Shown: positions 11,246-51,427 of the stretch, one piece after another
How positions within the stretch are numbered: position 1 is the stretch's first letter
How the letters are laid out: every line of letters starts with the position of its first letter
Source of the DNA: Mobula hypostoma
Taxonomy: Eukaryota
Length of the DNA stretch: 64,000 nt
Assembly: GCF_963921235.1 (NCBI RefSeq)
Contig: NC_086121.1
Span: 44,144,001 to 44,208,000, forward strand
Reading direction: 5' to 3'
The notes under the pieces: model-generated
Database searches by the model: none
Told to the model about the DNA's origin: nothing
The model's input: the letters and a program-made list of their open reading frames with translations, nothing else
Program-made: the position numbers and the translations under genes

Positions 11246-11503
11246 TCTGTCTTTTGTCTACTGATGTTAACTTATGTTTGACTTGTTATCATGTCCTCCT
11301 GCTGCTGTTGATGCTGAAAAACAACATTTATATCATGTGTTCATATGTCGATGACAATAAACTTAAACTAGAAAAGATTGTATATTGCATACTGTATTAC
11401 TGCAGATGTAAATTTAATACAAATGTATTTTTCATTCATTTTACAGGATGCTTATATTTAATAGTTCATAACTGAGAATTTTCTTTTCCAGAGTTTGAAG
11501 AAA

Positions 11504-11521
11504 ATGGCTAAAGTATTTTTG
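11504..11521 (+). CDS. First coding exon of the mucin-like gene (exon 11492-11521), MAKVFL, start of signal peptide
   Basis: Acceptor ttttcttttccag, ATG in strong Kozak context (AAAATGG), perfect donor TG|gtaagt, phase 0. Joins in frame to 12867. Confidence 0.7.
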
Positions 11522-12014
11522 GTAAGTTTATCAGCATAGAATAATGTGAAATGGTCATTTTCTGTCCACTGTTTACTCATTAACTCTGTGAAAGGTTTAG
11601 AAAGAGAGATTATGGTGTTTGACACATTTTATGTTGTGAGCTGATCAGGCTGTAGCTTCAAGGGTTAACGAACCTTCCTTGAGGGTCCTGGAAGAAGTTC
11701 TTACTTTCTGGCAGGCTCAAAGGGTTGAATGGCCTTTGCCTGACCCAATTTTTCTGGTAAAGCAATGTGGTATGAATGCATTAGTCAATTACAACAGAGA
11801 TCTACCTTTCCACATTGGGATCCGGGTCCCCTGAACACTGCTGTTCAGAAGGTTGGCTGGTGTTTAGGAACATTTTCTACAGAGAGGGCCCTTCAGATTC
11901 CTCACAACTTCAGCAAACAATTAATCATGCCTTAGATGTCACTGTTTCTTGATTTCCTTTGGGGTTGCAAACTGTTACATCCATTTGGAGGCTGTGAAAT
12001 ATTTTAATCAATAT

Positions 12015-12740
12015 GTTTAGTTAGATAAGGTAGTGAAAAGTACATAGGGGATATGTACTTTCATTAGCCAGGACACAGACTTTAACAGCAGGGAGATTAT
12101 TGTGCAACTTCATAAAACGTTGATTTGGCCACAGCTGGTGAATTGTGTGCATTACTCTGTGGGAGAGTATGAAACAGAAACGTACACATATGCTGGAGAG
12201 GCTGCAGAAGAGGTTCATCAGGAACCCTATAAAACCCTAGTTAGACCACACTTCAAATATTACATTCAGTTCTGGTCACCTCAGTTATAGGAAGGGTGTG
12301 GTAGCTTTAGAGCGGGTGCAGAGGAGATTTACCAAGATGCTGCTTTGATTCTGGAAAATGTCTTATGAGGATAGGCTAAGTGAGCTAGGGCTGTTCTCTC
12401 TGGCGAGAAGGAGGATGTGAGATGACGTGATAAAATTGTACAAGATGTATACCCATTTAGTAGGGTGGAAAAGGCTAATATTTACGAGGGGCATAATTTT
12501 AATGCACAGGGGAGATGTCAGAGATACGTTTTCATACACAGAGAGCAGTGGGTACATGAAAAGCACTGCCCAGTCTGGTGGCAGAGGAAGATACATTAGG
12601 AACATTAAATAAACTCTTAGTTAGGCATATGAATGACAGAAAAGTGGAGGGCAGGTTTAAATTGATTTTAGAGTAAGTTATAAGGTTGAAACAACATCAT
12701 GTAGGGTCTGTACTGTGGCATTGTGCTCTATGTTTTATTG
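12015..12740 (+). mobile_element. Degenerate CR1 3' fragment(s)
   Basis: YKTLVRPHFKYYIQFWSP motif. Confidence 0.7.
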
Positions 12741-12866
12741 CTTCAGATTATTGCAGAATAACAAGATGCGAGTTTCATTTGAGTTACTGAACCAACATTT
12801 TTCGTACTTATTTACAAGCCAAGCATGTTGTGATTTTGTTTCACACAAGTCTTTGTTTAATCCCAG

Positions 12867-12900
12867 GCATTTCTAACTGTTATCATACACTGCATCACCA
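12867..12900 (+). CDS. Second coding exon, AFLTVIIHCIT(+1 nt), hydrophobic core of signal peptide
   Basis: Acceptor ctttgtttaatcccag, donor A|gtaagt, phase 0 to 1. Gives MAKVFLAFLTVIIHCIT, a typical signal peptide, with a phase compatible with all downstream phase-1 exons. Confidence 0.7.
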
Positions 12901-13394
12901 GTAAGTATTACTATTTTTATTTTAACATTTATTACCATTTTTATTAGTTCTGAATATTTTTCAAATGGTAATTAACTGAATTATTTGTTTTTAGAATATT
13001 TTACTGGATATTGCCATGAGTATTTATCTCCCATTCTAAATAATGAAAACTTTGACTACAATATCAATGCTCTTTAAAATTTCATCCAGTACATTATAAA
13101 ATTATGCTAATCAACTTAAAAGTTACAACTGTAGAGGAACAAAATGGTCTTTGTGAAGGACTTAAGATGAATTTTGAACAGTAACTGGGCTTCAATTCTA
13201 TGGATCTGCCTGGTTCCTGAATTGAAACTGTCCAGTGGGAACAAATGTCACATTCTGAGACCTGAGATGAGCTGATAACTTACAAAGCTGGAATCACGCT
13301 CCACTGCTCATCACTACTCTGAATTCCTCAGAGAATGATGTTCACAGCAGGATTTAGACAATATTGTGGAATGGCAAAGTAACCCTTCTACTAC

Positions 13395-13960
13395 AAAAGG
13401 GTGTAATATTGAGACTTTATAAAGCACTGGTGTGGCTTCATTTGGAGTATTGTAAACAGTTTTGGGTCCCTTATTTTCGAAAGGATGTGCAGAAACAGGA
13501 GAGGGTTCAAAGGAGATTCACGAAAATGATTCCAGAATTGAACGGCTTGTCATATGAGGAGCGTTTGCTGGCTCTGGAGGGGCGCCCAAATGGGGAAAGG
13601 CTTTGATAGAGTGGATGTGGAAAGGATGCATCCTATGTTGGGAGAGTTTAAGGCCAGAGGACATGGCCTCAGAAGAGAGGGGCATCCTTTTAGAACAGAG
13701 ATGAAGAGGAATTTCTTTAGCCAGAGAGTGGTGAATCTGTGGAATTCATTGACACAGCCAGCTGTGGAGGCCTGGTATTTTTGTATATTTAAGGCAGAGG
13801 TTGATAGCTTCTTGATTGGTCAGGGCATGAAGCAATACGGGGAGAAGGTAGGAGAATGGAGGTAAGAGGAAAAATGGATCCGCCATGATGAAATGGCGGA
13901 GCAGACTCGATGGCTCAAATGGGCTAATTCTGCTCCTATATCTTATGGTCTTATGGTCTT
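13395..13960 (+). mobile_element. CR1 3' end
   Basis: LRLYKALVWLHLEYCKQFW, FFSQRVVNLWNSL, (cttatggt)n tail. Confidence 0.85.
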
Positions 13961-17165: not shown

Positions 17166-20100
17166 AAAATCTATTACCAGAATATACATTCAACCCTGAG
17201 ATTCTTCTTCTGTGGGCAAACTTAGCAAATCTATAGAACAGTAACTGTAAACAGGATCAATAGACAACACACTGTGCAAATACAAATATAAATAAATGGC
17301 AATAAATAAGAAGCATAAAATAACAAGATAAAGATTCCATAAAGTGAGACCATCGGTTGTGGAACACCAGAAACCTTGTGTGTGCAGTTATCCACTTTTG
17401 TTCAAGAGCCTGTTGGTAGACGGGAAGAAACTGTTCTTGAACCTGCTGGTGCGAGTCCTGAGGCACTTGAACCTTCTACCACATGGCAGCAGCAAGCAAA
17501 GAGCACGGCCTGGGTGGTGAAGATCTTTGAAGATGGATGCTGTTTTTCTACAACTATGTTTCATGTAGATGTGCTCAATGGTTGGGAAGGCTTTACCTGT
17601 GATGAACTGAGCCAAATCCACTACCTTCTGTAGGATTTTTCACTGAAAGGCATTGGTGTTCCCAAAGCAGGCTGTAATGCAGCCGGTCAGCATGCTTCCC
17701 ACCACATATCTGTGGAAGTTTGCCAAGGTTTTTGATGACATGCCGAATCTCTGTAGTCTCCTGAGGAAGTGGAGGTGCTGTCATGCTTTTTCTTCAATAA
17801 TATTTATATGATGGTCCAGGACAGGTTCACTGAGATCGTGACACCCAGGAATTTAAAGTTATTGACCCTTTCCACCTCTGATCCTCTGATGATTACTGGC
17901 TGATGGTCTTCTAGTTTCCCTCTCCTGAAGTCGATAATCATTTCCTTGGTCTTACTGACTTTGGGTGAGAGGTTGTTGTTATTACATCATTCAGCCAGAT
18001 TTTCAATTTCCCTTCTGAATGCTGATTCATCACCCCTTTGATACAGCCCACAACAGTAGTATCATCAGCCAACTTGAATATGGTGTTGGAGCTGTACATA
18101 GCCACACAGTCATAAGTGTAAAGCAAGTAGAGCAGTGGGCTAAACACAATCTCTGTAGTGCTGCTGTGCTGATGGAGATTGCGGAGGAAATATTTTTGCC
18201 AGAGCGAACTGACTGCAAGTGAGGACATCCAGGATCCAATTGCCTAAGGAAGTACTGAGGCCCAGGTCCTGGAATTTACTGATTAGTTTTGAGGGGATCA
18301 TGGTATTAAATGCTGAGCTATAATCAATAAAAAGCATCCTGATGTTTGCATTTTTGCTGTCCAGATGTTCCAGGGTTGTATGAGTAGCCAATAAGATGGC
18401 ACCTGTTGCCATGGTAGGCAAATTGGAACAGATCCAAGTTGCCACTCTTACAGGAGGTGATATGTTTCAACACCAGCCTCTCAAAGCACTTCATAATTGT
18501 GGATGTACTTCATCATTTTGATCTTAACCAATTTGGGCTAGCGATTCCTATTTTAGGTAACATATTTTTCCTCCCTCTTTTACGGATCGTGCTTTTCAAA
18601 TTTGGAAGACTAAGGGTATTTCACGGTTTTTGGATTTATTTTTAGATGGTTTCCTTATGTCTTTTGAACAATTATCTAATAAATATAATTTATCAAGAAT
18701 ACATTTTTTTAGATATCTACAAGTTAGAAATTTCCTAAGTACTATACTTTCTTCTTTTCCAATGCTTCCTCCTACATACATTTTAGATACTATAATTAAC
18801 CTTAATCCATGTCAGAAAGGTGCATCGGCTATGATTTATAATATTATTATGAAACTTAGGAAAGCTCCATTTGATAAGATTAGGGTAGATTGGGAACAGG
18901 AATTGGGGTCTATCATTTCCGTGGATGACTGGGGGCAGATTTTACGATTAGTCAATACTTCCTCTATCTGTGCTAAACATTCCCTAATTCAATTTAAAGT
19001 TGTTCATAGAGCACATATGTCCAAAGATAAATTAGCTCGCTTTTATTCTCATATTAATCCTTTTTGTGATAGATGTCCGGGGCAGATAGCCTCTTTAACT
19101 CATATGTTTTGGTCTTGTCCTACTCTGGAAACTTTTTGGAGAGACATTTTTAATATTATCTCCAAGGTATTGAATATAGATATCTCTCCTCACCCTATTA
19201 CTGCTATCTTTGGACTACCTAAAATTTCCAGTAATCTTTCTCCTTCAGCCCGTAGAATGATTGCATTTCTTACTTTAATGGCGAAAAGATGTATCTTACA
19301 ACGTTGGAAAGAGCTTAATGCTCCAACCACCTTTTTTTGGTTTTCTCAGACGATATTATGCTTGAATTTGGAGAAAATTAGAAGCAATCTTTATGATTCC
19401 TCACTTAAATTTGAACAGACCTGGAGATCTTTTATTCAATATTTTCATTTAATGTAATTTTTTTTCTCCTTTTTTTTGCTCCATATTAATATACCCTTCT
19501 TGTTTTTTTTTACTGTTTTTAATGGAGGTCGGGATTGAGGACGTGATTTTAAGTTTTTTAACTCTGCTTGGTTCCAAGTTAGCCCATTGCTTTGCTTTGC
19601 TTTTAGTTAGTTGCACGGTGGTTTTTTGGGTTTTTTTTTTCCTTTTCTCTATTGATATATATATATAAAAATTAGTATACTATTATGTTACCTTAGTATG
19701 TTATGTTTAAATTACATTGTTTGTATCATTTTTTTTGTATTAATATCTCCTGTAATTTTATTATATTCTAACAGTGTATTAGTGCCTATATGGCTTACCT
19801 TTTTGTATACTTATTCAATAAAAAGATTTAAAAAGAAAGAAAAGAGACAGGTCACCACACATTTCTTGGGCACCAGTACGATTGAAGCCTGCTTGAACCA
19901 GGTGGGTACCACACACTGCAGGAGTGAGAGGTTGAAGATATCCGTGAATATACCAGCCAGTTAGTCAGCACAGGCCTTCTGTACTTGGCCAGGTACTCAA
20001 TCTGGACCGGATGCTTTCCTTGGATTCAATCTCTTGAAGGTAGCTAACACATCATCTTTAGATACAATGGATCATTGGGAGACGTGGGGATAAGTGATGG

Positions 20101-22420: not shown

Positions 22421-25100
22421 GACTCAGAGGCTCCATCTTCCTCTCACCCCAACCCTCCCCTCTCCACTGACACCACCAGCCTCCCTTCCCCTCCCCGCTC
22501 TGATCCCACTTCTCATCCTTGCCTGGTCTTTACCATCCCCTCTGACATTCAACTGTCTGAGGCAGAACGCTCTGTCCTCAGTAAGGGCCTCACCTTTGTA
22601 CCCCTTCGCTCACACCTCAGCAAGTTCTGCGTTCTCCATGACGCTGAACTCTTCTTCCGCCGGCTCCGTCTTCGAGCCTACTTCTTTGGCAAGGACTCTC
22701 CCAACCCCACCGATGACCCTTTCTCCCCTCTTCAACCCTCTTCCTCTTCATGGACACCCTGCTCTGGTCTTCTGCCTGCTCTGGATCTCTTTATCGCTAA
22801 CTGCCAACGAGACATCAACCGTCTGAACTCACCGCACCTTGTTCCCATTCCAACCTGACTCCTTCCGAACGCTCTGCTCTCCACTCCCTCCACTCTAATC
22901 CTAACCTTACCATAAAACCCGCCAATAAGAGGGGTGCTGTTGTAGTCTGGCGCACTGACTTCTACCTTGCCGAGGCACAGTGACAACTCGCGGATACCTC
23001 CTCTTATTTACCCCTCGATCATGACCCCACTAATGAGCACCAGGCCATTGTCTCCCACACCATCAACGATTTTATCCACTCAAGGGATCTCCCATCCACT
23101 GCTACCAACCTTATAGTTCCCACACCCAACATTTCCCGTTTCTACCTCCTACCCAAGATCCACAAACCTGCCTGTCCAGGTAGACCCATTGTCTCAGCTT
23201 GCTCCTGCCCCACTGAACACATTTCTGCATACCTCGACACTGTTTTATCCCCCCTCGTGCAATCCCTTCCTACCTATGTTCATGACACTTCTCACGCTCT
23301 GAAACTTTTCGCTGATTTTAAATTCCCTGGCCCCCACCGCTTTATTTTCACCATGGATGTCCAGTCCCAAAATACTTGCATCCCCCATCAGGAAGGTCTC
23401 AAAGCTCTCCGCTTCTTTTTGGATTCCAGACCTAACCAGTTCCCCTCTACCACCACTCTGCTCCGTCTAGCAGAATTAGTCCTTACTCTTAATAATTTCT
23501 CCTTTTGCTCCTCCCACTTCCTCCAAACTAAAGGTGTAGCCATGGGCACCCATATGGGTCCTAGCTATGCCTGGCTTTTTGTTGGCTTTGTGGAACAATC
23601 TATGTTCCGTGCCTATTCTGGTATCTGTCCCCACTTTTCCTTCGCTACATCGACAACTGCATTGGCGCTGCTTCCTGCATGCATGCTGAGCTCGTTGACT
23701 TCATTAACTTTGCCTCCAACTTTCACCCTGCCCTCAAGTTTACCTGGTCCACTTCCGACACCTCCCTCCCCTTTCTAGATCTCTCTCTCTCTCTCTAGAG
23801 AGAGCTTATCTACTGATGTCTACTATAAGCCTACTGACTCTCAGAGCTATCTGGACTATTCCTCTTCTCACCCCGTCTCTTGCAAAAATGCCATCCCCTT
23901 CTCGCAATTCCTCCATCTCCACCGCATCTGCTCTCAGGATGAGGCTTTTCATTCCAGGTTAAAGGAGATGTCCTCCTTTTTTAAAGGAAGGGGCTTCCCT
24001 TCCTCCACCATCAACTCTGCTCTCAAACGCATCTCCCCCATTTCACGCACATCTGCTCTCACTCCATCCTCCCACCACCCCAGTAGGAATAGGGTTCCCC
24101 TTGTCCTCATCTACCACCCCGCCAGCCTCCAGGTCCAACATATTATTCTCCATAACTTCCGCCACCTCCAACGGGATCCCACCACTAAGCACATCTTTCC
24201 CTCCTCCCCACCCCCGCTTTCCGCAGGGATCGCTCCCGACACGAGTCCCTTGTCCATTCGTTCCCCCCCTCATCCTTCCCCACCGATCTCCCTCCTGGCA
24301 CTTATTCTCGTAAGTGGAACAAGTACTACACATGCCCTTACTTACACTTCCTCCCTCACTACCATTCAGGGCCCCAGACAGTCCTTCCAGGTGAGGCGAC
24401 ACTTCATCTGTGAGTCGGCTGGGGTGATATACTGCGTCCGGTGCTCCTGATGCGGCCTTCTATATATTGGCGAGACCCGACGCAGACTGGGAGATCATTT
24501 CGCTGAACACCTATGCTCTGTCCACCAGAGAAAGCAGGATCTCCCAGTGGCCACACATTTTAATTCCACGTCCCATTTCCATTCTGATATGTCTATCCAC
24601 GGCCTCCTCTACTGTCAAGATGAAACCACACTCAGGTTGGAGGAACAACACCTTATATTCCGTCTGGGTGGCCTCCAACTTGATGGCATGAACATTGACT
24701 TCTCAAACTTCCGCTAATGCCCCACCTCCCCCTCGTACCCCATCCGTTATTTATATACACACATTATTTCTCTCACTCTCCTTTTCCTCCCTCTGTCCCT
24801 CTCACTATACCCCTTGCCCATCCTCTGGTTTTTTCCCCCCCCGCCCCTTTCTTTTTTTCTAGGCCTCCTGTCCCATGATCCTCTCATATCCCCTTTGCCA
24901 ATCACCTGTCCAGCTCTTGGCTCCATCCCTCCCCCTCCTGTCTTCTCCTATCATTTTGGATCTCCCTCTCCCACTTTCAAATCTCTTATTAGCTCTTCTT
25001 TCAGTTAGTCCTGACGAAGGGTCTTGGCGCGAAACGTCGACTGTACCTCTTCCTATTGATGCTGCCTGGCCTGCTGCGTTTACCAGCAACTTTTATGGGT
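22421..25100 (+). mobile_element. Penelope-like retroelement with nearly complete RT + GIY-YIG and pLTR (frameshifted)
   Basis: PKIHKP...GRPIVS, FTMDVQS, LQTKGVAMGTHMGPSYA, VIYCVRCS..LYIGETRRRL. Confidence 0.92.
25008..25041 (+). ncRNA. Minimal type I hammerhead ribozyme motif
   Basis: GTC-CTGACGA-AGGGTCTTGGCGC-GAAAC-GTC-GAC (stem II weakened). Confidence 0.65.
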
Positions 25101-26624
25101 GTTTCAAGGACCCTTCATCTCATGTTCTCAATATTTATTGCTTATCAAATTTATTTTTATCGTTTGTATTTGCACAGTTTGTTCTCTTTTGCACACTGGT
25201 TGTCCACCGTGTTGGATGCAGCCTTTCATTCATTTTATTATCGTTATTAGATTTATTGAGTATGCCTGCAGGAAAACAAATCTCAGGGTTGTAAATGGGA
25301 ATATGTATGTATTTGTTTTGATAATTTTACTTTGATCTTTGATATTCATAGGGTCCTTGATATTCTTGGACATAATGCAAAGAATGCTAATGTGTTTTAC
25401 AAGTGGACTCAGATAAAGATGTCTTTCTGTACTTATGGGAAGCTAGAGACCCTTAGAAAATTTACTGCTCGGAATTCACAGTCCCTGATGACTCCCTTTC
25501 AGAAGTTATGTTGTTAGTTGACTGATAAGTGAAGGGTAGTAAGGGAAATGAGCCTGGCTTGGTAATTGGAGTTTTAGTTTTGCAAACAGTGATCACAACT
25601 CCTCCAGATTTAGGATAGTTATGGATAACAATAGGAATCAAGGGAAGAGTGGACCTTGTGATTGAAATGGAAAAGGTGAACTACAACAGCATGAGGAAGC
25701 AGCTGTGGATAGTCGATTTCGAGTAGCTGTTATTGGTTTAGTTCATATATGAAATGTTAGAGTCCTTTGAAGGACAACTGGTCAGAAGCCAGGACCAAAA
25801 TGTTCTTGTGAGGAACACAGATCCGAATGGCAAATTTTAGGATCCTTAGATAGAAGGACTTGATGTAAATTTTGTCTGTTTGTAATGTTTAGGCGGCTGA
25901 AATCTGGTTGGGCTCCAATGGAATATAAAGGATGCAGGAGAGTACATCAACAGGGTATCAGGAGTTCTAAAAATGCCATAAAATATCCTTAGAGAGAAGA
26001 ACTAAGGAAAATCCTGAGGCATTTAATGCAATCTTTATAAAAAAGAGGATGGTTATACCTCTGAAGAACAAAGGAGGGAAATCATACCTGGAGCCAGATC
26101 AGGCGGGTGAGGAACTATATAATTTAGCGCTTTGGCTCAATATTCACCAAGAAGAGAGCATACACTATATTGAGCTCATGGATGGACAGGTATGGTGATG
26201 TTTAAAGCATGAGGCTAATTGGAATGAGAGCAATATTATCAATCTTTTTGGTATCTTCTCTTTCAATTATGATCATAATCACATGAACTGTAACCATCAA
26301 AACAACGTCTTTCAAGAGAAAAGACTTTCTTTACCACCAACTCCACTTTGACAATTTTGATGCCAAATTTATATTCACAACTTGTTACCAACTTGCTTTG
26401 CATGTGATGATGGGAGGTTTGTAGAATGCATTCCACATCAGTTGAAGTCAAGGAAGCATAAATTATACTTGGCACAAATAGTGAATTGTTTAAGACCTAT
26501 TTAAATATTGAGGCAGAATCAGAATCAGCTTTAATATCACTGGCATATGTTGTGAACTTTGTGAACTTTGTGGCAGCAGTACAATACAATACATAATAAC
26601 AGAGAAAAATATGAATTACAGTAA

Positions 26625-29278: not shown

Positions 29279-29283
29279 AACAG

Positions 29284-29381
29284 GTGTAATGTTGCTGTTG
29301 GATTCTATTGTGAGAACGACCAGCAAAGTGATCAGAGCTGCCAAGATTACAGAATACGATTCACCTGCCCTCCATCATTTT
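29284..29381 (+). pseudogene. Orphan second-half CysD/WxxW exon (CNVAVGFYCENDQQSDQSCQDYRIRFTCPPSF); partner first-half exon missing
   Basis: 98-nt paralog of 51330-51427 with the same aacag|G acceptor and T|gtaagt donor. It starts in phase 2, but I find no phase-2 donor exon upstream. A CR1 fragment abuts the acceptor. Confidence 0.75.
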
Positions 29382-29722
29382 GTAAGTATGGGAAAATGGA
29401 AGTCATGGAGTTCAGAACATCAGCTATAGAATGACGGTTGGATCTTTAGCTGATTTAATGCAGTCTGAGCTGATCATTCCCTCTCCCACCGTCTTACTAA
29501 AGGTATCTATGTTCACTTCTGTATTGTCCAAAATTCCAGTTACCCATATCTTGAACACTCCTTATTTGACACTTCCTGGAGTTTGAGAAAGCCTTGGAAC
29601 CCTGGGTGACAGGTGAGGCCCAGGTGGGAAGAGAAGACACTTCCACAGATAGCCCATGTGATGATTGACTGTCAATAATTTAAAAATTGCTATTAACTGA
29701 ATTGTTTTGTTTCTGCTTTTAG

Positions 29723-29749
29723 GTGCTGTTCTTTCTACTCCAGATACAT
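29723..29749 (+). CDS. 27-nt symmetric microexon, (S/C)AVLSTPDT
   Basis: Same acceptor context as the downstream microexons (ttaactgaattgttttgtttctgcttttag), donor gtgagtatatc, phase 1-1. Confidence 0.75.
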
Positions 29750-30287
29750 GTGAGTATATCCTGTCCACTCTAAATAGGAAGATCTTTGACTAATGTTCAA
29801 CTGCAACTTCAAGCCTCATCTGGCTGTTTTAAGAGCTCCTTGATATGAATTTTATTGAATCGCGCTTCCAACCTCGTAAAATATGGCCATAAGACCTTTC
29901 CTTCTCAAACAATTCGATGCATTTAGATCACTAACCATTCCCTCATTCTGTGGGTTAGTCTGGCACTGGAATTGCAACAATCCAATTGGCGCCCATATTT
30001 TCCATTCATCTGTCACCAGTTCCAAATGGTCAACTTAGATTGACTGCTGTTTAAAAGCAACATCTAGTGACCTATGTATGACTATGTAGAACATGCTTCA
30101 TGCAGAATTATTTACTGATGTCCCTCTGGGTGGGACAGAATATGAAGAAAAAAGAAAACGCATTTAAGTTCCAAAGAGGTCAGGTAGCACCACACTCACA
30201 AACGGAGTTCAGTATTTATCAAAGCAACACACATCAAAGTTGCTGGTGAACGCAGCAGGCCAGGCAGCATCTCTAGGAAGAGGTACA

Positions 30288-30321
30288 GTTGACGTTTCAG
30301 GCCGAGACCCTTCGTCAGGAC
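30288..30321 (-). ncRNA. Minimal type I hammerhead ribozyme motif
   Basis: Reverse complement reads GTC-CTGACGA-AGGGTCTCGGCCT-GAAAC-GTC-AAC. Confidence 0.65.
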
Positions 30322-33300: not shown

Positions 33301-33569
33301 CCATCCGTTATTTATATTTATACACACACATTCTTTCTCTCTCTCCTTTTTCTCCCTCTGTCCCTCTGACTATACCCCTTGCCAATCCTCTGGTTCCCCC
33401 CCTTGTCTTTCTCCCCGGATCTCCTGTCCCATGATCCTCTCATATCCCCTTTGCCTATCACCTGTCCAGCTCCTGGCTCCATCCCTCCCCCTCCTGTCTT
33501 CTCCTATCATTTTGGATCTCCCCCTCCCCTTCCCACTTTCAAATCTCTTACTAACTCTTCCTTCAGTTG

Positions 33570-33603
33570 GTCCTGACGAAGGGTCTCGGCCTGAAACGTT
33601 GAC
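33570..33603 (+). ncRNA. Minimal type I hammerhead ribozyme motif
   Basis: GTC-CTGACGA-AGGGTCTCGGCCT-GAAAC-GTT-GAC. Confidence 0.7.
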
Positions 33604-35142
33604 TGTACCTCTTCCTAGAGATGCTGCCTGGCCTGCTGCGTTCACCAGCAACTTTGATGTGTGTTGTTTGAATTTCCAGCATCTGCAGAATTCCTGTAGT
33701 TCAGTATTTATCGAATAGATGATGTGCTCAGAACCTTCCATCAACAACCTGGCAGAAATATCACTGAGAACAGTCATGTTGAGTTGATATGGAAGAAAAG
33801 CCTGACAGTCATAAGTTTTATCAACAGTCTCTGATGAACACTGGCTCAGCTGTTGTCCATTGGAACACCAACGAGTCAATCTTGATTTTAAAGGGAGTAA
33901 TGGGGTTGTGTACTCATCTACATTGTTGAGTCTGTAGAACAACTGGGCAATTAACAAAGGTATAAATTAACACATCCCCAAGAATTGGCCAATTGTTGGA
34001 CAACACAATGATAAATAAAATCTAGCCATTTTTGATGGATGTCTGGACATTTGTCATAGCCGAGACGTCCACCAATAACATTGTTGCTACGCTTGCATTA
34101 GGAGCTGAGCTGAAGCTGCGTGTTCTGCATTCATTTGTTCACCTTCTGACACTTCAAGCACACTCCTCTGATCACTATATTGAAGGAACACATGCAGTGA
34201 CATATTCACTACTCACTGGTGTGGGTGCGCTCATGCTTATGCAGCTCAACACCATTCAGAGTCCAATATATTTCTCTTGCGTCAGCATCCTGAAGCTACA
34301 AATAGTACAATCTGCAGTGCACATTGTAATAACTGATCGTGTTTAACCCCAGCTATGCCTGCCTTTCATTGGCATCGTGGAACAAGCCATGATCTGAATT
34401 TACACTAGTAACACTCCTCAACTCTTTCTCTGCTACGGTGAGGGTGTTGTTTCTGCACCTGTGTGGAAATTACGCAGCATCTCTGGAAAGAAAATCATGT
34501 TGACACCTGAACCTTTAACTTGGAGCTTTGAGTGTGAGTAGGTATTTCCAGTAGGATGGCAGCATGGTCAGATGCAGCAGCTACCTGTGTCCAATCGAAC
34601 TTCTCTTTGTTCATCCTTTATATCTTCTTTTTATGATCGCAGGTCACTGCAAAGTACTGCAGGACTGTCCCATCAGTGAGTTGTTTGATAACGATGGAGC
34701 TGGACTTGTTGCGTATCACTGTTTTGTTTCCACCTGGACTTGTTGCACCATAATGGTGCATGGTGCGAGTGGATGTTTTTATTGGGATTACAAGCCCCTG
34801 TTGAACTTTGGTAATGTGGTATACTGTGGAGCCGTGTTGCCTCAGCATTGGCGAGAACTAGTCCAAATGCATGGGCTTGCATTTTGCATCCACCCAGGAG
34901 AGGAACTGCCGAGGCAATGTTTGGGAAATTCCATGTGGAGTGCTAGAATCCATATTGGGTTGGAACCTGGTGACTCCTTTCAGTGCTGCTCTCCAGTGGA
35001 CCAGAACTTTTCTGAAATTGTAACATATCTGCTATTTGTTCCACAGCATGTGCTATGTGCTGTTGGTAACATATATTGCACCTTGGCCCTGGAAATATGC
35101 TGCTTCATTAGCCGTATTCATATATGGTTATACCATAATTAA

Positions 35143-41784: not shown

Positions 41785-44700
41785 TTACCATAAGACCACA
41801 AGATAAAAGAGCAGAATTAGGCCATTTGGTGTATCGAGTCTGTTCCACCACTTCATCATACCTGATCCATTTTCCCTCTCAGCCCCAATCTTCTGTCTTT
41901 TCCCTGTATTCCTTTGTGCCCTGACTAACCAAGAATCTATCAACCTCTGTCTTAAATATACTGTACCTAAATACTTGGCCACCACAGCTGCCTGTGGCAA
42001 TGTATTCCACAGATTCACCACCCTCTGGCTAAAGAAATGCCTCTTAACCTCCGTTCTAAAAGGAAGCCCCTCTATTCCGAAGCAGTGTCCTCTGGTCTTA
42101 GAATCTCCTACCACAGGAAACATCCTCTCCACATCCACTGTGTCAAGGCTTTTCATCATTTGATAAGTTTCAATGAGGTCAGCCCTCAATCTTCTGAATT
42201 CCAGTGAGTGCAAACCCAGAGCCATGAAATGCTCTTTATATGTTCAATCTCGGAATCATTTTCGTGAACCTCCATTGAACCCACCCTAATGTCAGTGCAA
42301 CCTTTCTCAGGTAGGGACTTAAAACTGCCCACAACACTTTAAGTTGGATATGGCTCAAGTGCAGAGCAAGAGACGCTGAAGTGGACAGTATCTCAAGGGA
42401 ACGGAATTTCTACACAAGACTCCCAAGTCCCTTTGCACCTCAGCTTTTTGTATTTTCTCCCAATTTAGAAAATAGTCTACCCTTTCATTTCTTTTACCAA
42501 AGTGCATGACTATACACTTTCTGACACTGTGTTCCATTGGCCTTTTCTTTGCCCTCACTCCTCATCTGCCCAAGTTTCCCAGTAGCATCTCTACTTCCAC
42601 AAACCACCTGCTTCTCTACTTATCTTCGTAACATCCGCAAACTTTGCAACAAAGCCATCAATTCCATCATCCAAGTCATCAACATATAACATAGAAAGAA
42701 GTGGTCCCAATGCAGACCCCTGTAGAACACCACTAATCACCAGCAGCCAGCCAGAAATAAGCTCCCTTTATTTTCACTCTTTAACTCTTGCCAATCAGCC
42801 TCTGCTTTAGCCATGCTAGTATCTTTCCTGTAATACCTTGGGCTCTTAACTTGTGTAGCACCTTATCAAATGCCTTCTGAAAATCAAAGTATACAACATC
42901 CACCCATTCTCCTTTGTCAATCTTGCTTGCTACTTCTTCAAAGAATTCCAACAGATCTGTAAGGCAGGATTTCCCCTTCAGGAAACCATGTTGACTACAG
43001 TTTATTTTATCATGTGCCTTCAAGTATTCCGTAACCACACCCTTAACAATTGACTCCAATATCATTCAACCTCTGAGGACAGCCTAATTGTCCTATAATT
43101 TCCTTTATTCTGCCTCTCTCCTTTCTTGAAGAGTGGAGTGACATTGCAATTTTCCAGTCTTCTGGAACCATTTCAGAATCGAGTGATTCTTGAAAGATCA
43201 TTTCTAGTGCCTCCACAATCTCTGTACCATCTCTTACAGACCTCTGTGGTGTACACCATCTAGTCCAGCTGACTTATCGACCTTCAGACCTTTCCCAAGA
43301 ACCTTCGCAGTAGTAATGGCAACTTCACACACTTGCCTCCTGACACTCTCAAACCTCCAGCATACTACTGGTGTTTTCCACTATGAAGACTGATGCAAAA
43401 TACTTATTCAGTTCATCTGCCATTTCCTCGTCTCCATTACTACCTCTCCAAAATCATTTTTTAGCGGTCCGATATCCATTCTCACCTCTTCTATGTGTCT
43501 GGAGAAACTTTTATGGTCCGCCTTCATATTGACTAGGTTACCTTTGTGTTCCATATTTTCTTGCTTACTGACTTTTTAGTTGTCTTCTGTTTGCTCTTGA
43601 AAGCTTTCCAATCCTCTAACATCCCACTAATTTGTTCTATTATATGTTCTCCCTTTGGCTTTTAGGTTGGCTTTGGCTTTTTCCTCTTTAGGATGTATAT
43701 ATTCTGCACCTTCCAAATTTCATTCAGAAATTCCAACCATTGCTGCTCTGTCATTATCCCTGCCTTTTCTTAACCCACTTATGCTTTTCCAATCATTTTT
43801 GGCAATTACCTTTCTCATGCCTCTGTAATTCTCTTTACTGTTCCTGAATACTGATGCATCTGACTTTAGTTTCTCCACAAATTTCAGGGTGAATTCTATC
43901 ATATTATGATCAGAGTTCCTTTATGTTCAGCTCTTTAGTCAATTTAGATTAGATTAGATTAGATTCAACTTTCTTGTCATTGTGGCAAGTACAGATACAA
44001 AGCCAATGAAATGCAGTTAGCATCTGACCGGAATTGCAAAGAATAGTGTTATTTACAAAATAACTGCGAATAAAAAGTAAGTGCTACAGCTCACAAATAT
44101 AAAAGTACTGAGACAATACAATATGGGTGCAATACTGCTTAGCGCTGTGATGAGAGGTTCAGCAGGGTCACAGCCTCAGGGAAGAAGCTCTTCCTATGCC
44201 TGCTGGTGTGGGAGCAGAGGCTCCTGTAGTGCCTACTGGATGGGAGGAGAGTAAAAAGTCCATGGTTAGGGTGAGATGCATCCTTGATAATGCTTTTTGC
44301 CCTGCCCAGGCAGCATTTATGGTAGATGTTCTCAATGGTGGGCAATTGGGTGCCGATAATCCGCTGGGCAGTTTTCACCACACGCTGGAGTGCTTTGCGG
44401 TCCGATACGGGACAATTGCCATACCACACTGAGATGCAGTTGGTGAGTATGCTCTCAATGGTACAGCGGTAAAAGTCCATCAGTATCCTGGGACAGGGGT
44501 GAGGTTTTTTGATGCTCTGTAGCAAATAAAGGTGTTGTTGCGCCTTTTTGACCAGGGTGGAGGAGTTCAGGGACCAGGTGAGATCCTCAGAAATATGGAC
44601 ACCAATGAATTTGAAGCTTGATATACGGTCCACTACAGCTCTGTTGATGTAGATGGGGAGGTGAGTGTGGCTGCTAGAATGCCTGAAGACCACAATGATC

Positions 44701-45960
44701 TCCTTGGTCTTCTGGGTGTTAAGGGCCTGGTTATTGTCGGCACACCATGCGGCCAGGTGCTGGACCTCGTCCCTGTAGGCTGTCTCGTCATCCGCTCTGA
44801 CCACACCAACCACCATGGTGTCGTCTGCGAACTTGATTATGGAGTTAGAACCATGTACAGGAACGCAGTCATAGGCGAAAAGGGAGTACAGAAGAGGGCT
44901 CAGCACACAGCCTTGAGGCACGCCGATGTTTAAGGTGAGTGTGGAGGAGGAGAGGTTGTCTAACTTAACTGATTGGGGTCTGTTAGTCAGAAAGTCCAAG
45001 GTCCAATTGCAGAGGGATGAGCTGATACCAAGCAGATGAAATTTGGCGATCAGCTTGGAGGGGATCACAGTATTGAATGCCGAACTAAAGTCAATGAACA
45101 GCATTCTGACGTAAGCGTTGGGGCTGTCCAGGTAGGTTAGGGCAGAGTGAAGTGCCATGGAGATGGTGTCCTCTGTTGACCTGTTGGTGCGATAGGCAAA
45201 TTGATGGGGATTCAGGGTAGTAGGCGGACAGGATTTCAGATGTGATAGAACCAGTCTCTCAAAGCACTTTTCAATGATTGGGGTGAGTGCAACTGGGCGG
45301 AAGTCATTCAGGCCCGTGGCAGTGAAATGCTTCAGCACTGGCACGATGGTGGTGATCTTGAAGCTTGTGGGATGACTGCCTGGGCCAGGGACAGATTAAA
45401 ATTCTGGTTCATAGCACAACACCCATTCTAGAATATCTGATCTTCTAGTGGGCTCAACCATGAGTTGCTCTAAAAAGCCATCTTGTATGCATTTTGGAAA
45501 TTCCCCCTCGTGGGGTACAGCACCAACCTGATTTTCCCAATCTACCTGCATATTGAAATCTCCCATGCCTATTGTAACAGTGCTCATTTGGAATGCATCT
45601 TCTATCTCCAGTTGTAATTTGCAGACCACATCTTTACTACTGTTTGAGGGTCTGTATATAACTCCCATAAGGGTCTTTTCACCCTTGTAGTTCCTAGCTG
45701 TAGCCACGATTCAGCATTTTCTGATCCTGTCACTTCTTTCTAATGATTTGATTTTCATTTTTTATCAACAGGGCCTCGCCATCCCATCTGCCTTTCAATA
45801 CAGTGTATATCCTTGGACGTTAAGCTCCCAGCTGTAATCTTATTTCAGCCATGATTCAGTGATGGGCACAAGCTCATATGTGCCAATCTGTAACTGTGTT
45901 ACAAGTTCATCTAACCTATTCCATATACTTCATGCATTCAAATATGAAACCTATTCACTC
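41785..45960 (-). mobile_element. Long CR1 (endonuclease to 3' tail), interrupted by Rex1
   Basis: TLMGVIYRPSNS...MGDFNMQVDW, SQHGFLKGKSCLT...DFQKAFDKV, FFSQRVVNLWN. Confidence 0.9.
43945..45396 (-). mobile_element. Young Rex1/Babar non-LTR element; 401-aa open RT frame (44139-45344); (TCTAA)n tail
   Basis: [54 protein letters not shown]. Confidence 0.92.
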
Positions 45961-47015: not shown

Positions 47016-47137
47016 CTCTTCTCAAAATAACGGAGCAACCTGCCAGTTTTCTGAGATGATGCCTGTGGCTAGACAGAACAAAAGATATTGGTCAGCAGTC
47101 TCTTCTCTTATCTTTCTCAATAAACTGCTGTATATCC

Positions 47138-49307
47138 TTTCATAATCACGGATTCGGCAGTGCATCAGATTCGGCAATTGCACTGGTGAATATGCACATG
47201 TCAGCTAATTATTATTTCATTGTGATAGTATTGGACCCAGCGGAGAGAGAGCAGCTGACCTTGGCCATGAGATTCATTCGTCAGAGTGATCCGTCGAGAC
47301 AGCAATATTCCGTTGAATTCCTATGTATGAACTCATGTTTCTGTCTCCAGCGTGACAGAAGGATTTTGCCAAGTAATTGACCCAGGAAAGTTTGAACAGT
47401 GATGTTTTGACATTGGTGGCTTGAGGAGAGGGTGCCTTCTATTCTCAGTGCATGTCCTGACTCTACATTCCGAGAGTCCCAAGTCTATATACCGAGCTTC
47501 TCTAGTCTACATTACGTTTCTCCGGTATCTATTCCAAGCTTTTCAAGTCACAAGTACACAGGTTCCCAGCATTGTGGTCCCATGACTCAGATCTGCATTA
47601 CAAATGAGCGCTTCGAGCAAGCTTTTCAATTGATTCAACAAATCGTCATTCAAGTCAATAGTGTAAATTCTGGAAGAGCCCTACTCCAAAAGCTGAACCC
47701 TGGCTGGAGTGTACAAGTACACAAGTAAAGTAACCCAATCAAGAGTATTTTTAGCCCCTTGATGCAAGTCATGGTACAGACTGGGAACATTGAATTTTTA
47801 TGTAGCAACTTAAAACAGATTGATAGAGAACCACCTAGCTTAGCGATGAAAGAAAGCTGTTTATGCTGTCTTGATCTGTAAAATTGAGTATATCCTAATT
47901 GTGTCTGGAAAAAATAGTGAACAGTAAAACACTGTGAACAAGATTTGAAAAGGTTCCTTCTCTAGGTTTCAAGTTTCATGGTTTCAAGGTTTTCCAAAGA
48001 CTTTTCTCTATGTTCCCAGGGTTTTCATTTCCCAATCATTTCCAAGGCTTAATATGTTTAGTGTTTTTCAATGTCCGCCCCATCTCAGACTCCCAAGCCA
48101 CCCTCTGGCCCCGCCCGAGGTTTCTTGATTTCTGTCTGTGAGGGTTCCCAGGCCCCTCAGGATTCCCCGGTCACTCAGTCTGTTGGGGTACCCAGGCCCC
48201 TCAAGATTTCACCGGTCTCTCAGTCTGTTGGGGTTCCCAGGCCCCTCAAGATTCCCCAGTCTCTCAGTCTGAAGGGGATTCCCAGGCCCCTCAAGATTCC
48301 CCGGTCTCTCAGTCTGTTGGGGTTCCCATGCCTCTCTCTCGTTCCCCAGGTCTCTCGAGTTTTTAGATCTTCCTGGGACACCAGGTGCCAGCTGTAAAGA
48401 AGGGGGTTTTGTGGTGACTTCAGACCTGTGCAAGGCATCAGAGAGCTTTTGGGCTCTGGGGTTTTTAGATCACCTGAATTGGTTAATTGTTGCTTAAAAG
48501 TTATTAATGGTTTTAGTTTCTTGTGTTTTTCTCGAGCGACTCGCTCTTTGTAATGCAGTTTCTGGTGCTTTCTGTTTAAGTTTATTTTGATAAATTCAGA
48601 TTCTGTGTTCATTTTATTCTTGAAGCAGATGCTGTATTACCTCCAATCGGAGGGTCCTTGTTTTGAGAATGATTTGTCTCACGGTGTCACTTGGTTGAGT
48701 TACCTCTGTCTAAGCTCTTGTTTTTTCTTTCTCTACATGGAAGTCTTTGGCTCTGATATTGGCAGTGCACACCATGACACTTATCTACCAGCATCACTGA
48801 AGGACACCTTGGACAAGTCCCTCTTTCGGGACTTCCAATGGACATGGGTCTGTGGCGCCTCAGGGGCTGCGCCTAGAGATGAGGGCCCAGTCACAACCAC
48901 AGATTCAGCAGCGCATCAGATTCGGCAATTGCGCTCGTGAATATGCACACGTCAGCTAATCATGATTTCATTGTGATAGTATTTAACTCCATTCATTCCG
49001 TCGTAGTATTTGTCAAGACTTGGACATAGCTACGCTTTGTTATCTACATTTCGCTTTGCCCGAGAAATTGGACTGTTGAGTTAACTGACTCTGGAGACTA
49101 GCGATATTTGTTTTATTCTTAGTTGTTCTTTTCAGCTGCAGTGTAGGCTTTATTTTCCATTCGAGAATTTTTGTGAATGGCCCTGTTTTGGCCTAGCGTT
49201 TATTGTTTTCTTTTCCCTATAACACTGTTCGCATTAAAGTCTGTGAACTATCGACTTGCTTCAGTGTCTCTCACTCCGCACTTGGGCCATATCCGAACCA
49301 GATGACA
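47138..49307 (+). mobile_element. Degenerate LTR retroelement remnant (Gypsy-like)
   Basis: Direct repeat of about 70 bp (47163-47232 / 48914-48983), terminus GATGACA, imperfect TSD tatcc/tattc, internal tandem repeats of about 42 bp (48140-48330). Confidence 0.5.
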
Positions 49308-49921
49308 TATTCCACCAGACACCATGGACTTACCCACTTCAGTGCTCTTTAAGAGATCCAACATCTCACCTCACTTACATCAAAATGCCCTAGCATGTTA
49401 CTATATTTGGCAATGAACTCCCTATCCTGCAAGTCATTCTTTTTCGTCACTACTCATTAAGGAACTCACCCACATCCTCCACATCCAGCTGAATGTTTCC
49501 CCTCTATTGTTGAGGGGTTCAACCTTCTCCCCACTTACCCTCTTCCTCCTGATGTATGTATAGAATGCCTGAGGACTCTCTTTATTCCCCTTTGCCAATG
49601 ATTTTTCATGGCCCCCTCTGGGTTTTCTAATTTTTTTTGAGTTTGTTTCTGGCTTACTTGTAATCCTTAAGGGTTGTGCTTGATCTTATCTTCCTGAGCT
49701 TTTACTTCTTATCTAAATTCACCACCTCTCTCAGTATCCAAAGTTCTCTTCCATTACCATCTTTGTCCCTTCTTCTGACAGGAACATAATGTACCTGTTT
49801 TGTACTGTGGGAAGTCGGTCTTTAAACACACTCCACAGGTTGGATATGGACATACACAAAAATGCTGTTCCTAATTCACTGTCCACAGTTCCTGCCTAAT
49901 GCTCTCTGAATTTGCCCTGCT

Positions 49922-50630
49922 TGTCGCGGAGAGAACGGGTGAACCCAAACGCAGGACACTGACACAGAGGTAGCGTAATCAGAAGTGTGTTTATTAATAG
50001 TTGCAGGGAAGGCCGGGGAGCGGGGATTAGATAGAGGAAAGCGGAGGAGTGAGCGAGGCTGGTCCGTGGATCAAAACCGGGTCGCTACAGTGAGAACACG
50101 GCAATTAACCACTAAGCCAGCGGAGAATGTAGACGGACGGCGAGATGAGGCACAGCCGGGATGCAGACAAGGGGATGAGCGTGGCTGGGGGAGAGCTGCG
50201 GGCGACATGCCATGCTCCTGTTAACTGAGACTGGGTTAACACGGGCAAACAGCGCGGGAACAGAACTTAGAACACACAATTCTAAGCAGTCGAGAGACAC
50301 GGTTAACACCGGCAAACAGCACGGATGAACGGAAGAGCAGGAGGCAGGCAAAACTTTTCTTGACACAGGGCACTGCTGGAGCTGAACGGCAAACAGGAGA
50401 CAGGCAGCAGGCAACACTTATCTTGACACGGAGCGTTAAATGGAAAGACCAACGGCAGGCAATACTTATCACACTGGCTGAAGCAACAATCTGGCAACGA
50501 GTGGATGCAAAGCCAGGGATTTTATGCTGCAGGTTTAGATGAGAATCACGTGCCACAATCCAGGAGCCCAGGAGAACATGGGAAAAGAGAATAAGGAGAA
50601 TAAGAGGAATTAACAGTTGGGACCGTGACA
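49922..50630. mobile_element. Solo LTR with 5-bp TSD CTGCT
   Basis: ctgct|TGTCGCGG...CCGTGACA|ctgct; 8-bp inverted termini; CpG-rich, so probably young. Confidence 0.88.
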
Positions 50631-51043
50631 CTGCTCTTATTTAATACTCTCCCATGGGTTTCAGACTTAAGCTTAACGATAGCTATCTTAAAAATTAACT
50701 GTTTGTAGTCACTTTTCCCTGACTGCTCAGCCACTGAACATTCGGTCAAATGGCCAGGCTCATTCAACAGCAGATCCAGTACAGTACCTGTCTTGTTGGA
50801 AGGGGTCAGGACCTGCTCTGGGAGCTGAGTGGAAACAGTCCCATCAGTCACTATGGGACAGGAAGAGTAAAGGAAAGTGACCAGTACATCATTTATCATT
50901 GACACATTGCGGTCTCATCTGCAAGTTGATATGATACATTTTGATGCAGAATGTATGCTATGCTCGACAATGTCAGCAGATAAGTTCCACCAAAATGTGT
51001 TCACTATTAATGTAAAGTTTTAACGTTTTTTTCTCATCTTCAG

Positions 51044-51221
51044 CAAAAATATGCAAAACTGAATGGTTTAACATTGATGACCCATCAGGAGAGGGAGATT
51101 ATGAAGTTTTTAACCATCTGTATATTCAATTTCCCAACCGCATCTGCCTTTATCCAATCACCTGTGAGGTGGAGACAACATCAGGGGTTCCAGCCTCACA
51201 GACTGGAGAGAACATTGAACC
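51044..51221 (+). CDS. CysD/Mucin2_WxxW domain exon A (KICKTEWFNIDDPSGEGDYEVFNHLYIQFPNRICLYPITCEVETTSGVPASQTGENIE)
   Basis: Acceptor tttttttctcatcttcag, donor CC|gtacgt. The WF-x-x-D-D-P-S-G-x-G-D-Y-E and C-x-x-P motifs are characteristic of MUC2/MUC5/CILP CysD domains. Confidence 0.9.
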
Positions 51222-51329
51222 GTACGTAACAAAGCTGCTCATATTGTTTCACAAATATTACTTCATTCCAAAAAGCATTGAGAGCTTCTTCAATGACTCC
51301 ATTACATGTTCCTTCTCTGTGGTGAACAG

Positions 51330-51427
51330 GTGTAATGTTGCTCGTGGATTCTTCTGTAAGAACGACGATCAAAGTGATCAGATGTGCCAAGACTACAGAA
51401 TACGATTCACCTGCCCTCAATCACATT
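51330..51427 (+). CDS. CysD/Mucin2_WxxW domain exon B (CNVARGFFCKNDDQSDQMCQDYRIRFTCPQSH)
   Basis: aacag|G acceptor, T|gtaagt donor, phase 2 to 1. Motif G-x-x-C-x-N-x-x-Q...C-x-D-Y-x-I-R-F-x-C matches the CysD C-terminal half. Confidence 0.9.

Follow-up and report, generated by a model that had tools for sequence, protein, structure and literature searches.

A probable batoid member of the si:dkey-205h13.2 family of VWD-less CysD proteins, with a derived architecture

The window analysed here, a stretch of 64,000 nucleotides of Mobula hypostoma DNA, contains a gene that is very probably a batoid member of the VWD-less family of proteins composed of a signal peptide and a CysD array, of which zebrafish si:dkey-205h13.2 is the type; its architecture is derived and its translation start lies most likely at 11504. 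The encoded protein belongs to a known fish family, within which it has been locally remodelled, and is not a novel kind of protein. The gene is already annotated as the NCBI model XP_062888954.1 (Mobula hypostoma LOC134337692; P0020), and residues 133-307 of this model correspond to the spliced exon chain described below, with 175 residues identical. The window would contain the 5' two thirds of LOC134337692, for which a gene range of 194.5 kb is recorded, and the C-terminus lies outside the window. The model is 339 aa in length and is frameshifted at its 3' end, where a frameshifted splice choice is responsible for a premature stop.

Exon chain, splicing and the CysD domain

The gene is read on the forward strand and the following features were located within the window.

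11492..11521, + strand: first coding exon, 30 nt, comprising a 12 nt leader, the ATG at 11504 and 18 coding nt (MAKVFL); acceptor ttttccag, donor gtaagt
12867..12900, + strand: second exon of the predicted signal peptide, 34 nt, ending in phase 1 and encoding AFLTVIIHCIT; last bases CCA
29286..29381, + strand: orphan half-exon, the remaining second half of a lost first CysD, aligned to 51330-51427; open, splice sites intact, skipped in the transcripts seen
29723..29749, + strand: linker microexon, 27 nt, phase 1-1, (S)AVLSTPDT(S)
51044..51221, + strand: CysD (Mucin2_WxxW) exon 1, 178 nt; joint 51221>51330 in four runs; PF13330 at 76.9 bits
51330..51427, + strand: CysD exon 2, 98 nt, ending in phase 1, with the GT of the next exon completing the last Cys codon
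52444..63659, + strand: twelve 24-nt PTS microexons, starting at 52444, 53099, 54979, 55627, 56824, 57489, 59204, 59852, 61096, 61744, 62988 and 63636; first joints seen in RNA

The initial annotation of this DNA had proposed that coding exons of 18 nt and 34 nt splice in phase to a 27-nt exon and then to the CysD exons, and this chain is borne out by the canonical splice sites present at all of the exons described, by the open frame and by the match to XP_062888954.1. The end of the first coding exon was corrected to 11521. Phases along the chain run 0, 1, 1, 2, 1, with each later 24-nt microexon in phase 1-1, and the joined chain forms a 214-aa open frame over 17 exons in which every splice site is intact. 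Its translation begins MAKVFLAFLTVIIHCIT-S-AVLSTPDT-S-KICKTEW...

Evidence from RNA comes from spliced contigs of four runs (X1-X4), all belonging to one study, which contain the GT..AG joints 51221>51330, 51427>52444 and 52467>53099. Directly before 51044 the X1 and X3 contigs carry CCA and then the complete 27-nt exon. A junction of 51044 to other upstream exons, named in the initial annotation as a refuting outcome, is not what these contigs contain. CCA is the end of exon 12867-12900, whereas TTT closes the orphan half-exon, which is therefore not the upstream partner of the 27-nt exon. The link between 12867-12900 and the 27-nt exon is based on the public gene model, on the three RNA bases (CCA) and on a loose end with room for both signal-peptide exons; the X1 contig has about 91 more bases upstream.

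The Mucin2_WxxW domain expected by the initial annotation was recovered by Pfam as the only domain of the gene model (PF13330, 76.9 bits against a cutoff of 22.4). This CysD begins at residue 28 of the Met-11504 protein and retains every invariant residue of the family, and the first Trp of its WxxW motif is replaced by Lys (KTEW). The predicted model of the domain has a pLDDT of 92.6 and its sequence matches in the PDB are the CysDs of MUC5B, MUC5AC and MUC2, to which the model is also similar in fold (TM 0.70-0.76).

Predicted signal peptide and translation start

Translation most likely starts at 11504, and the first ~17 residues would then form a cleavable signal peptide. Over residues 1-13 of the Met-11504 protein, Kyte-Doolittle values of 2-3 mark a hydrophobic core; residue 3 is a Lys, and positions 15-19 are occupied by small residues. 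Homologous N-termini are found in the stingray Hemitrygon and the skate Amblyraja (MAKVFLAFLTVIIHCIT in the window, MAKVLLVFLTVIIHCTT in Hemitrygon and MVKAFLVFITIVKLCT in Amblyraja), and Amblyraja radiata retains both predicted signal-peptide exons together with their splice sites, with matches at 25/30 exon and 25/30 flank bases for the first and at 26/34 exon and 26/30 flank bases for the second.

The NCBI model reads differently at this point, passing through the first coding exon as SLKK-MAKVFL. It places the start in upstream exons, giving an open, in-frame extension of 132 residues before MAKVFL from exons outside the window. If this extension is translated, the hydrophobic stretch would be internal, either as an ordinary segment or as an uncleaved signal anchor. 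The first coding exon carries a conserved acceptor, which implies at least one non-coding or upstream exon outside the window, and the ~91 extra upstream bases of the X1 contig can also be counted in favour of an upstream start. Against this, the extension is rich in G, R, L, S and A and lacks any Pfam domain. It is missing in the paralogue and in the stingray, skate and shark proteins, all of which begin at the homologous Met, and a similar spurious extension with TE-like sequence occurs in a Chiloscyllium model. Moreover, positions -3 and +4 relative to the ATG at 11504 are occupied by A and G, respectively. An upstream start is considered highly unlikely.

The 132-residue extension of XP_062888954.1 has no match anywhere in the window. 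A tblastn match at 19902-20039 to the Chiloscyllium model was discarded; it is TE-like, contains a stop and falls inside the spurious N-terminal extension of that model.

The lost first CysD and the PTS microexon array

Three features are specific to the ray gene: the first CysD has been lost, an old inter-CysD linker has been reused at the N-terminus and the PTS microexon array has been enlarged. The ancestral form was probably SP-CysD1-linker-CysD2-linker and so on. CysD1 would have lost its first half-exon, with the second half being skipped, and the former inter-CysD linker exon would in this way have come to lie directly after the signal peptide as an N-terminal linker.

The stingray orthologue has its CysD1 at the position of the orphan half-exon. 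With an identity of 26/33 in each comparison, the orphan is equally close to CysD1 of Hemitrygon, to CysD2 of Hemitrygon and to the CysD of the window, so that it is position and not sequence that assigns it to CysD1. No RNA contig of X1-X4 shows a joint to it, and a search of the Mobula runs with five sampled words from it returned values of 0-0.2, which is a weak negative. A remnant of the first half-exon of CysD1 was sought upstream of 29286, where the sequence is unrelated. The 27-nt linker matches AAPPTPDTS, which lies between both CysDs of the Hemitrygon protein (P0012). The comparison can be extended along the N-terminus of Hemitrygon akajei XP_072887756.1 and Hypanus sabinus si:dkey-205h13.2, which share the predicted signal peptide; in Hemitrygon, CysD2 and the linker that precedes it (..TPDTSKICKTEWFNIDDPSGEGDYE) match the linker and CysD of the window. 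In contrast to the window gene, both stingray proteins have an intact CysD1 between signal peptide and linker, and their linkers are short.

The DNA between these exons had been attributed in the initial annotation to transposable elements and duplicated intron. LINE-type reverse transcriptase ORFs do occur in the long introns, and a duplication is present but is only modest in extent (29279-29519 against 51325-51567, 83.5% identical).

After the CysD, T, S and P make up 71% of 94 residues, and the PTS sequence derived from microexons amounts to at least 96 residues. The array extends past the end of the window, and fossil CysD exon starts persist in the microexon introns. It is likely that the downstream CysD exons decayed as the linker microexons multiplied. 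The secreted product would then begin with a linker of 10 residues, followed by one CysD and by a PTS tail open to O-glycosylation, with one octapeptide for each 24-nt microexon.

The single CysD noted in the initial annotation holds for the part of the gene within the window and is a derived local state, since the stingray orthologue has the order SP-CysD1-linker-CysD2-PTS and a paralogue has seven CysDs. The protein may be larger, with further CysD-PTS units, comparable to the seven of the paralogue, past position 64000 and the solitary CysD an effect of the window end, a possibility of appreciable weight but less likely than not. The array leaves the window within a gene range of 194.5 kb, the neighbouring skate gene model of 2649 aa contains WxxW domains only and the early stop of the NCBI model stems from its splice choice. 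On the other hand, twelve successive microexons follow the CysD within the window, and the intervals between them contain no more of a CysD than fossil exon starts; judged by its length, an X4 contig of 556 nt reaches ~346 nt beyond the CysD.

The paralogue in question is the Mobula hypostoma protein XP_062888950.1 ('mucin-2-like', 861 aa). Its first 27 residues, which cover the predicted signal peptide and the linker, are identical to those of the window gene, its CysD is 98% identical and it has the same types of microexon. It differs in possessing seven CysDs, with exactly three microexons (24 aa) after each, whereas CysD exons are gone from the repeat units of the window gene. This close resemblance, together with the lost half-exon and the fossilised CysD exons, would also suit a duplicate of the paralogue that is still transcribed but is decaying and has no separate function. 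The microexons of two ABCD units differ at 6/96 bases, as compared to ~10.5% in the flanking intron, which is too few to prove selection, and to that extent the array is compatible with decay. Such a duplicate is nevertheless unlikely, as 214 aa remain open across 17 exons with all splice sites intact, splicing is correct in four runs and the CysD combines all of the invariant family residues with a confident fold.

Family placement, possible function and comparison with known systems

The zebrafish protein si:dkey-205h13.2 ('muc5AC') is a product of neuromast support cells that is needed for cupula growth, and skate and catshark homologues have been listed (PMC11765562). A signal peptide followed by one or more CysDs, without VWD, is the published plan of this family and the lateral line is its known site of expression (PMC11765562). 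Its members occur in sharks, skates, teleosts and lizards. Those closest to the window CysD come from sharks, skate and stingray, and the top ones consist of CysDs only and bear the name si:dkey-205h13.2 in sharks and a stingray. In a tree of 67 CysDs, the window CysD nests in a clade of batoids and sharks (98/93) and the MUC5AC CysDs are found on a separate branch (100/100). The initial annotation had regarded the gene as lineage-specific, a view that has to be given up, since the same plan occurs in the published zebrafish family and the window CysD lies inside the shark, skate and stingray clade. What had appeared to be a lineage-specific new mucin belongs to a family in which the only member studied forms the neuromast cupula. 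Family relatives terminate directly after the last CysD. Errors of annotation are seen throughout the family, in that 5' leaders are taken as coding, genes are split in two and C-termini represent intron read-through.

The product may be a gel or matrix glycoprotein, the single CysD of which would dock non-covalently onto CysD-rich partners such as the seven-CysD paralogue, and lateral-line-type secretions would be its probable site. The skin or mucus protein suggested in the initial annotation is a conjecture. The linkers between CysDs form a series, from none in sharks through 7 aa in skates, ~9 aa in stingrays and 24 aa in the Mobula paralogue to at least 96 aa in the window gene, where the CysDs have decayed. 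A speculative and rather doubtful extension is that, in myliobatiform rays, a lateral-line matrix protein built purely as a chain of CysDs is turning into a true PTS mucin through multiplication of linker microexons. The product, with its single CysD, could then dock on CysD networks as a monovalent glycan brush or chain cap, and might be a core protein of the gel of lateral-line canals or of the ampullae of Lorenzini. To our knowledge, the mucin-like protein scaffold of ampullary gel is still undefined. Batoid lateral-line or ampullary gels are places in which to seek the protein. The locus itself is a clear stepwise case of change in domain architecture, involving exon loss, exon skipping and microexon amplification.

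Gel-forming mucins (MUC2/5AC/5B/6/19) place D1-D2-D'-D3 assemblies of VWD, C8 and TIL before their CysD and PTS regions and carry VWD4, VWC and a cystine knot at the C-terminus; in CILP, TSP1 and Ig domains come after the WxxW domain. The absence of VWD, C8 and TIL exons before the CysD, reported in the initial annotation, was confirmed for the window by tblastn with ~200 fetched proteins, including full-length VWD-bearing mucins of the MUC5AC type, which revealed no VWD, C8, TIL or CK exon. Matches at E<0.01 were confined to 29.3 kb and 51.0-51.4 kb, apart from intron read-through tails and one TE-like piece; the VWD-bearing mucins themselves matched the CysD exons only, and the predicted signal peptide is spliced to the CysD via one 27-nt exon. 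VWD is likewise absent from the transcripts seen. The window could in principle hold the middle of a MUC2/5-type gel-forming mucin or of a CILP-type protein with its other domains lying outside, as is hinted at by automated naming, in which the paralogue is 'mucin-2-like' and the relatives in skate and Hemiscyllium are 'cartilage intermediate layer protein 1-like'. This is extremely improbable and already largely refuted. In transcripts as well as in four species, the CysD is directly preceded by a start codon and predicted signal peptide, and the relatives, including the 2649-aa skate protein, have Pfam PF13330 only. The exclusion of a MUC2/5 orthologue in the initial annotation is supported, as is that of CILP with regard to what follows the CysD.

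With MUC2, MUC5AC and MUC5B the window gene shares the CysD fold and a PTS region adjoining the CysD. It differs from them in the lack of D1-D3 VWD before the CysD, in its separate CysD clade, in having KTEW for WxxW and in a PTS region that is derived from microexons, whereas theirs is encoded by one large exon. CILP and CILP2 likewise have an N-terminal WxxW-type domain after the signal peptide, but in the window gene this domain is spliced to PTS microexons in the RNA of four runs and is followed by no CILP-type exon such as TSP1 or Ig, the CILP side of the comparison being general knowledge. The squamate 'mucin-2-like' CysD proteins (such as Podarcis muralis XP_028597936.1) are comparable in plan, with a signal peptide, CysD, P/T/S-rich linkers of 70-270 aa between CysDs and no VWD; they differ in having several CysDs and other linker repeats.

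The system to which the window gene belongs is that of si:dkey-205h13.2 and its shark, skate and stingray homologues. All have a predicted N-terminal signal peptide directly before CysD and lack VWD, VWC and CK (for the window gene, as far as the window and the transcripts seen extend), the CysD clade tracks the species tree and the two-exon structure of the CysD is also found in skate. Whereas the zebrafish and shark proteins consist of back-to-back CysDs (6 to 27), essentially without PTS, the window gene combines one intact CysD with at least 96 PTS residues.

A spliced CysD–PTS transcript

The window is CpG-depleted vertebrate DNA of around 42% G+C with zero N runs, and canonical splice sites are found at every exon claimed in the initial annotation. 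The exons, given with their strand, are as follows.

Exons of the spliced chain
11492–11521, +, exon 1: strong acceptor ttttcttttccag, ATG at 11504, 18 coding bases
12867–12900, +, exon 2: 34 nt, phase 1 at its end
29723–29749, +, 27-nt exon: microexon-type acceptor ctgcttttag, donor gtgagt
51044–51221 and 51330–51427, +, CysD exons: separated by a phase-2 intron of 108 nt
52444 to 63659, +, microexon array: twelve 24-nt exons, each phase 1-1

The ATG at 11504 has a favourable context, with A in position -3 and G in position +4. The 27-nt exon, for which the initial annotation named no position, is the sole candidate between 12.9 and 51 kb with both a microexon-type acceptor and a gtgagt donor. 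The spliced chain forms an open frame of 214 amino acids, reading MAKVFLAFLTVIIHCIT, S, AVLSTPDT, S, CysD and PTS (a Pro/Thr/Ser-rich stretch), in which the CysD spans 92 residues with 8 Cys, and T, S and P make up 71% of the 94 residues that follow it. As far as the end of the seventh microexon the chain is identical to residues 133–307 of XP_062888954.1 (P0020), 'uncharacterized protein LOC134337692' of Mobula hypostoma, which came up when 1.8 billion proteins were searched without a profile.

This gene model starts 132 residues upstream of the MAKVFL Met, in exons outside the window. The extension is G/R/L/S/A-rich, without domains and missing from all orthologues, and is probably leader taken for coding. 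At its 3' end the model uses the donor at 59256 and from there reads microexons 61096, 62988 and 63636 in the wrong frame (YCFYYNSR...), until a stop codon arises at the junction to the next microexon. Both ends of the model look like annotation artefacts. The gene range (194.5 kb) extends beyond the window, and the single CysD is a count within the window only.

The RNA evidence comes from four runs of one study, guessed to be RNA and identified as such because their joints are GT..AG with the introns missing. Words of 51044–51427 are present at 52–65% in the four runs, as expected of spliced RNA, and contigs aligned on 47800–53700 carry the GT..AG joints 51221>51330, 51427>52444 and 52467>53099. 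In two of the runs (X1 and X3) the 30 letters preceding 51044 are CCA and the entire 27-nt exon. Exon 12867–12900 ends in CCA and an orphan CysD half-exon at 29286–29381 in TTT, which rules out the orphan as upstream partner. Unaligned contig ends of 182 and 120 nt are long enough for the 27-, 34- and 30-nt exons together with 91 or 29 nt of further upstream exon. The proposed order, from signal peptide (SP) exons through the 27-nt exon to CysD and PTS, is confirmed. What is shown is a spliced transcript in which a start codon and a hydrophobic N-terminus lead into one CysD and a tail rich in T, S and P; polymerising D domains are absent from the window.

Short contigs of the four runs also stack on both strands at 48965–49300 and 50374–50650 (summed depth at most 111), where loose ends are numerous and many joints are non-canonical. 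These pile-ups look like transcripts of repeat families that map to the intron and not like exons of the gene.

Identity and family of the CysD protein

The window CysD scores 76.9 bits against the Pfam profile PF13330 (Mucin2_WxxW; cutoff 22.4), and its phmmer matches are the solved CysDs of MUC5B, MUC5AC and MUC2. A structure predicted from 23 family domains (pLDDT 92.6) superimposes on these three with TM values of 0.70–0.76, nothing else being significant. As judged by profile and modelled fold, the domain is a genuine CysD. At 51052–51063 it reads KTEW, with Lys replacing the first Trp of WxxW. The family alignment has K-T-x-W in cartilaginous-fish and lizard members against W-x-x-W in those of teleosts and in human mucins, so that the cartilaginous-fish and lizard lineages lack the CysD's canonical Trp for C-mannosylation.

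The closest relatives are proteins of SP and CysDs only. They include 'si:dkey-205h13.2' entries from Stegostoma, Rhincodon, Chiloscyllium, Scyliorhinus and Hypanus sabinus, models from Leucoraja and Amblyraja, many teleost 'mucin-5AC-like' and lizard 'mucin-2-like' proteins and one limpet protein. Automatic names such as 'mucin-2-like' and 'CILP1-like' reflect the WxxW domain only. The published account of zebrafish si:dkey-205h13.2 gives it an SP, six CysDs and no VWD and places its expression in the support cells of neuromasts; cupulae of normal length and a normal startle response depend on it, and the homologues listed there include a skate protein with 27 CysDs and a catshark protein with 19 (PMC11765562). 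A tree built from 67 CysDs places the window domain next to the Mobula paralogue and Hemitrygon CysD2 within a batoid clade, itself within a batoid and shark clade (98/93), and the MUC5AC CysDs lie beyond a 100/100 branch.

The initial interpretation is therefore supported in part: the tree upholds the statement that this is not a MUC2/5 orthologue, and the description as lineage-specific has to be given up in view of the SP and CysD relatives in sharks, skates, stingray, teleosts, lizards and limpet and the published zebrafish member. The gene was annotated before and its family is published; its form, with one CysD and a microexon-encoded PTS, is locally derived.

Absence of VWD from the window and the putative role of the product

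About 200 proteins, including the full-length MUC5AC-type mucins P0009, P0014 and P0119 (with CGLCG-type D domains), were compared with the window by tblastn. At E<0.01 the VWD-bearing mucins gave no VWD match in the window, and matches were limited to the CysD exons (51.0–51.4 kb) and the orphan half-exon (29.3 kb), to tails of intron read-through and to one TE-like piece. Mucin2_WxxW is the only Pfam domain in the gene model and its relatives. Within the long introns there are reverse-transcriptase ORFs of LINE type (3766–4395, 18630–19454 and, on the minus strand, 44139–45341). An inverted retroelement pair of about 2.1 kb and about 91% identity (22954–25103, +, and 30226–32376, -), with a further repeat match between 23947–25103 and 32519–33665, brackets the orphan half-exon and the 27-nt exon within the long intron.

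By analogy with the family and with CysD biology, the protein would be secreted and O-glycosylated. Lacking VWD or CK, it would be unable to form covalent mucin polymers, and its single CysD may act as one non-covalent docking site; with one such site, the product would decorate or cap networks built on CysDs (the 7-CysD paralogue's, for example) and would not cross-link them. Placing it in the lateral line or the ampullae is a guess based only on the zebrafish protein.

Origin of the architecture and comparison with related genes

In support of the exon chain, Amblyraja radiata shares the two SP exons, acceptor and donors included (exon identity 25/30 and 26/34; flanks 25/30 and 26/30); the next exons there are a linker of 21 nt and a CysD in two parts. 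In Hemitrygon akajei XP_072887756.1 (P0012) the order is SP(MAKVLLVFLTVIIHCTT)-TTAQT-CysD1-AAPPTPDTS-CysD2-PTS, of which '..TPDTSKICKTEWFNIDDPSGEGDYE' corresponds to the window linker and CysD. The 27-nt exon is therefore the old CysD1–CysD2 linker and the window CysD is CysD2. The orphan half-exon, lying 342 nt upstream of the 27-nt exon, is by position CysD1 exon 2; its partner, CysD1 exon 1, is gone. Spliced in on its own, the orphan would disrupt the reading frame: it requires phase 2, and the SP exon leaves phase 1. Further downstream, fossil starts of CysD exon 1 (cttcag TCAGTAGCTGCAAAAC.GAATGG) survive in the microexon-unit introns, near 52.2, 54.3 and 58.6 kb.

The models P0004, P0012, P0020 and P0199 (Mobula, Hemitrygon, Leucoraja) end ..GEYI(L/A)PI(L/V).., which is translated intron immediately beyond a microexon donor (G|gtgagtatatcctg; window 29750–29780, 55003–55031 and 57513–57565). 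Such ends are a recurrent artefact of read-through, or retained-intron ends, and not a true C-terminal motif.

The 7-CysD paralogue XP_062888950.1 (P0004) and the gene studied here share one 47.2-Mb M. hypostoma chromosome, with ranges of 108.5 and 194.5 kb, identical SP and linker and CysDs 98% identical. Close behind each lies a small model (379 and 232 aa) that has no Pfam match; these two may be additional pieces of the arrays, consisting of PTS only. In Amblyraja radiata (CM021396.1, region L001, 9989–22147) a 163-aa 'CILP1-like' model comprises SP and first CysD. Two kb downstream of it, within the CysD array, begins a 2649-aa model with WxxW domains only; annotation has probably divided a single gene into these two. 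The CysD units here are of about 2.3 kb, each followed by a 21-nt GVTEPP microexon (12366, 14607 and 16973 in L001).

The linkers form a series, from none in sharks through the 21-nt microexon (GVTEPP) of skates and about 9 aa in Hypanus to the three microexons (24 aa) behind each of the seven CysDs of the Mobula paralogue, and ending with at least 12 microexons behind one CysD in the window gene. The lizard relatives, likewise without VWD, have long P/T/S-rich linkers too.
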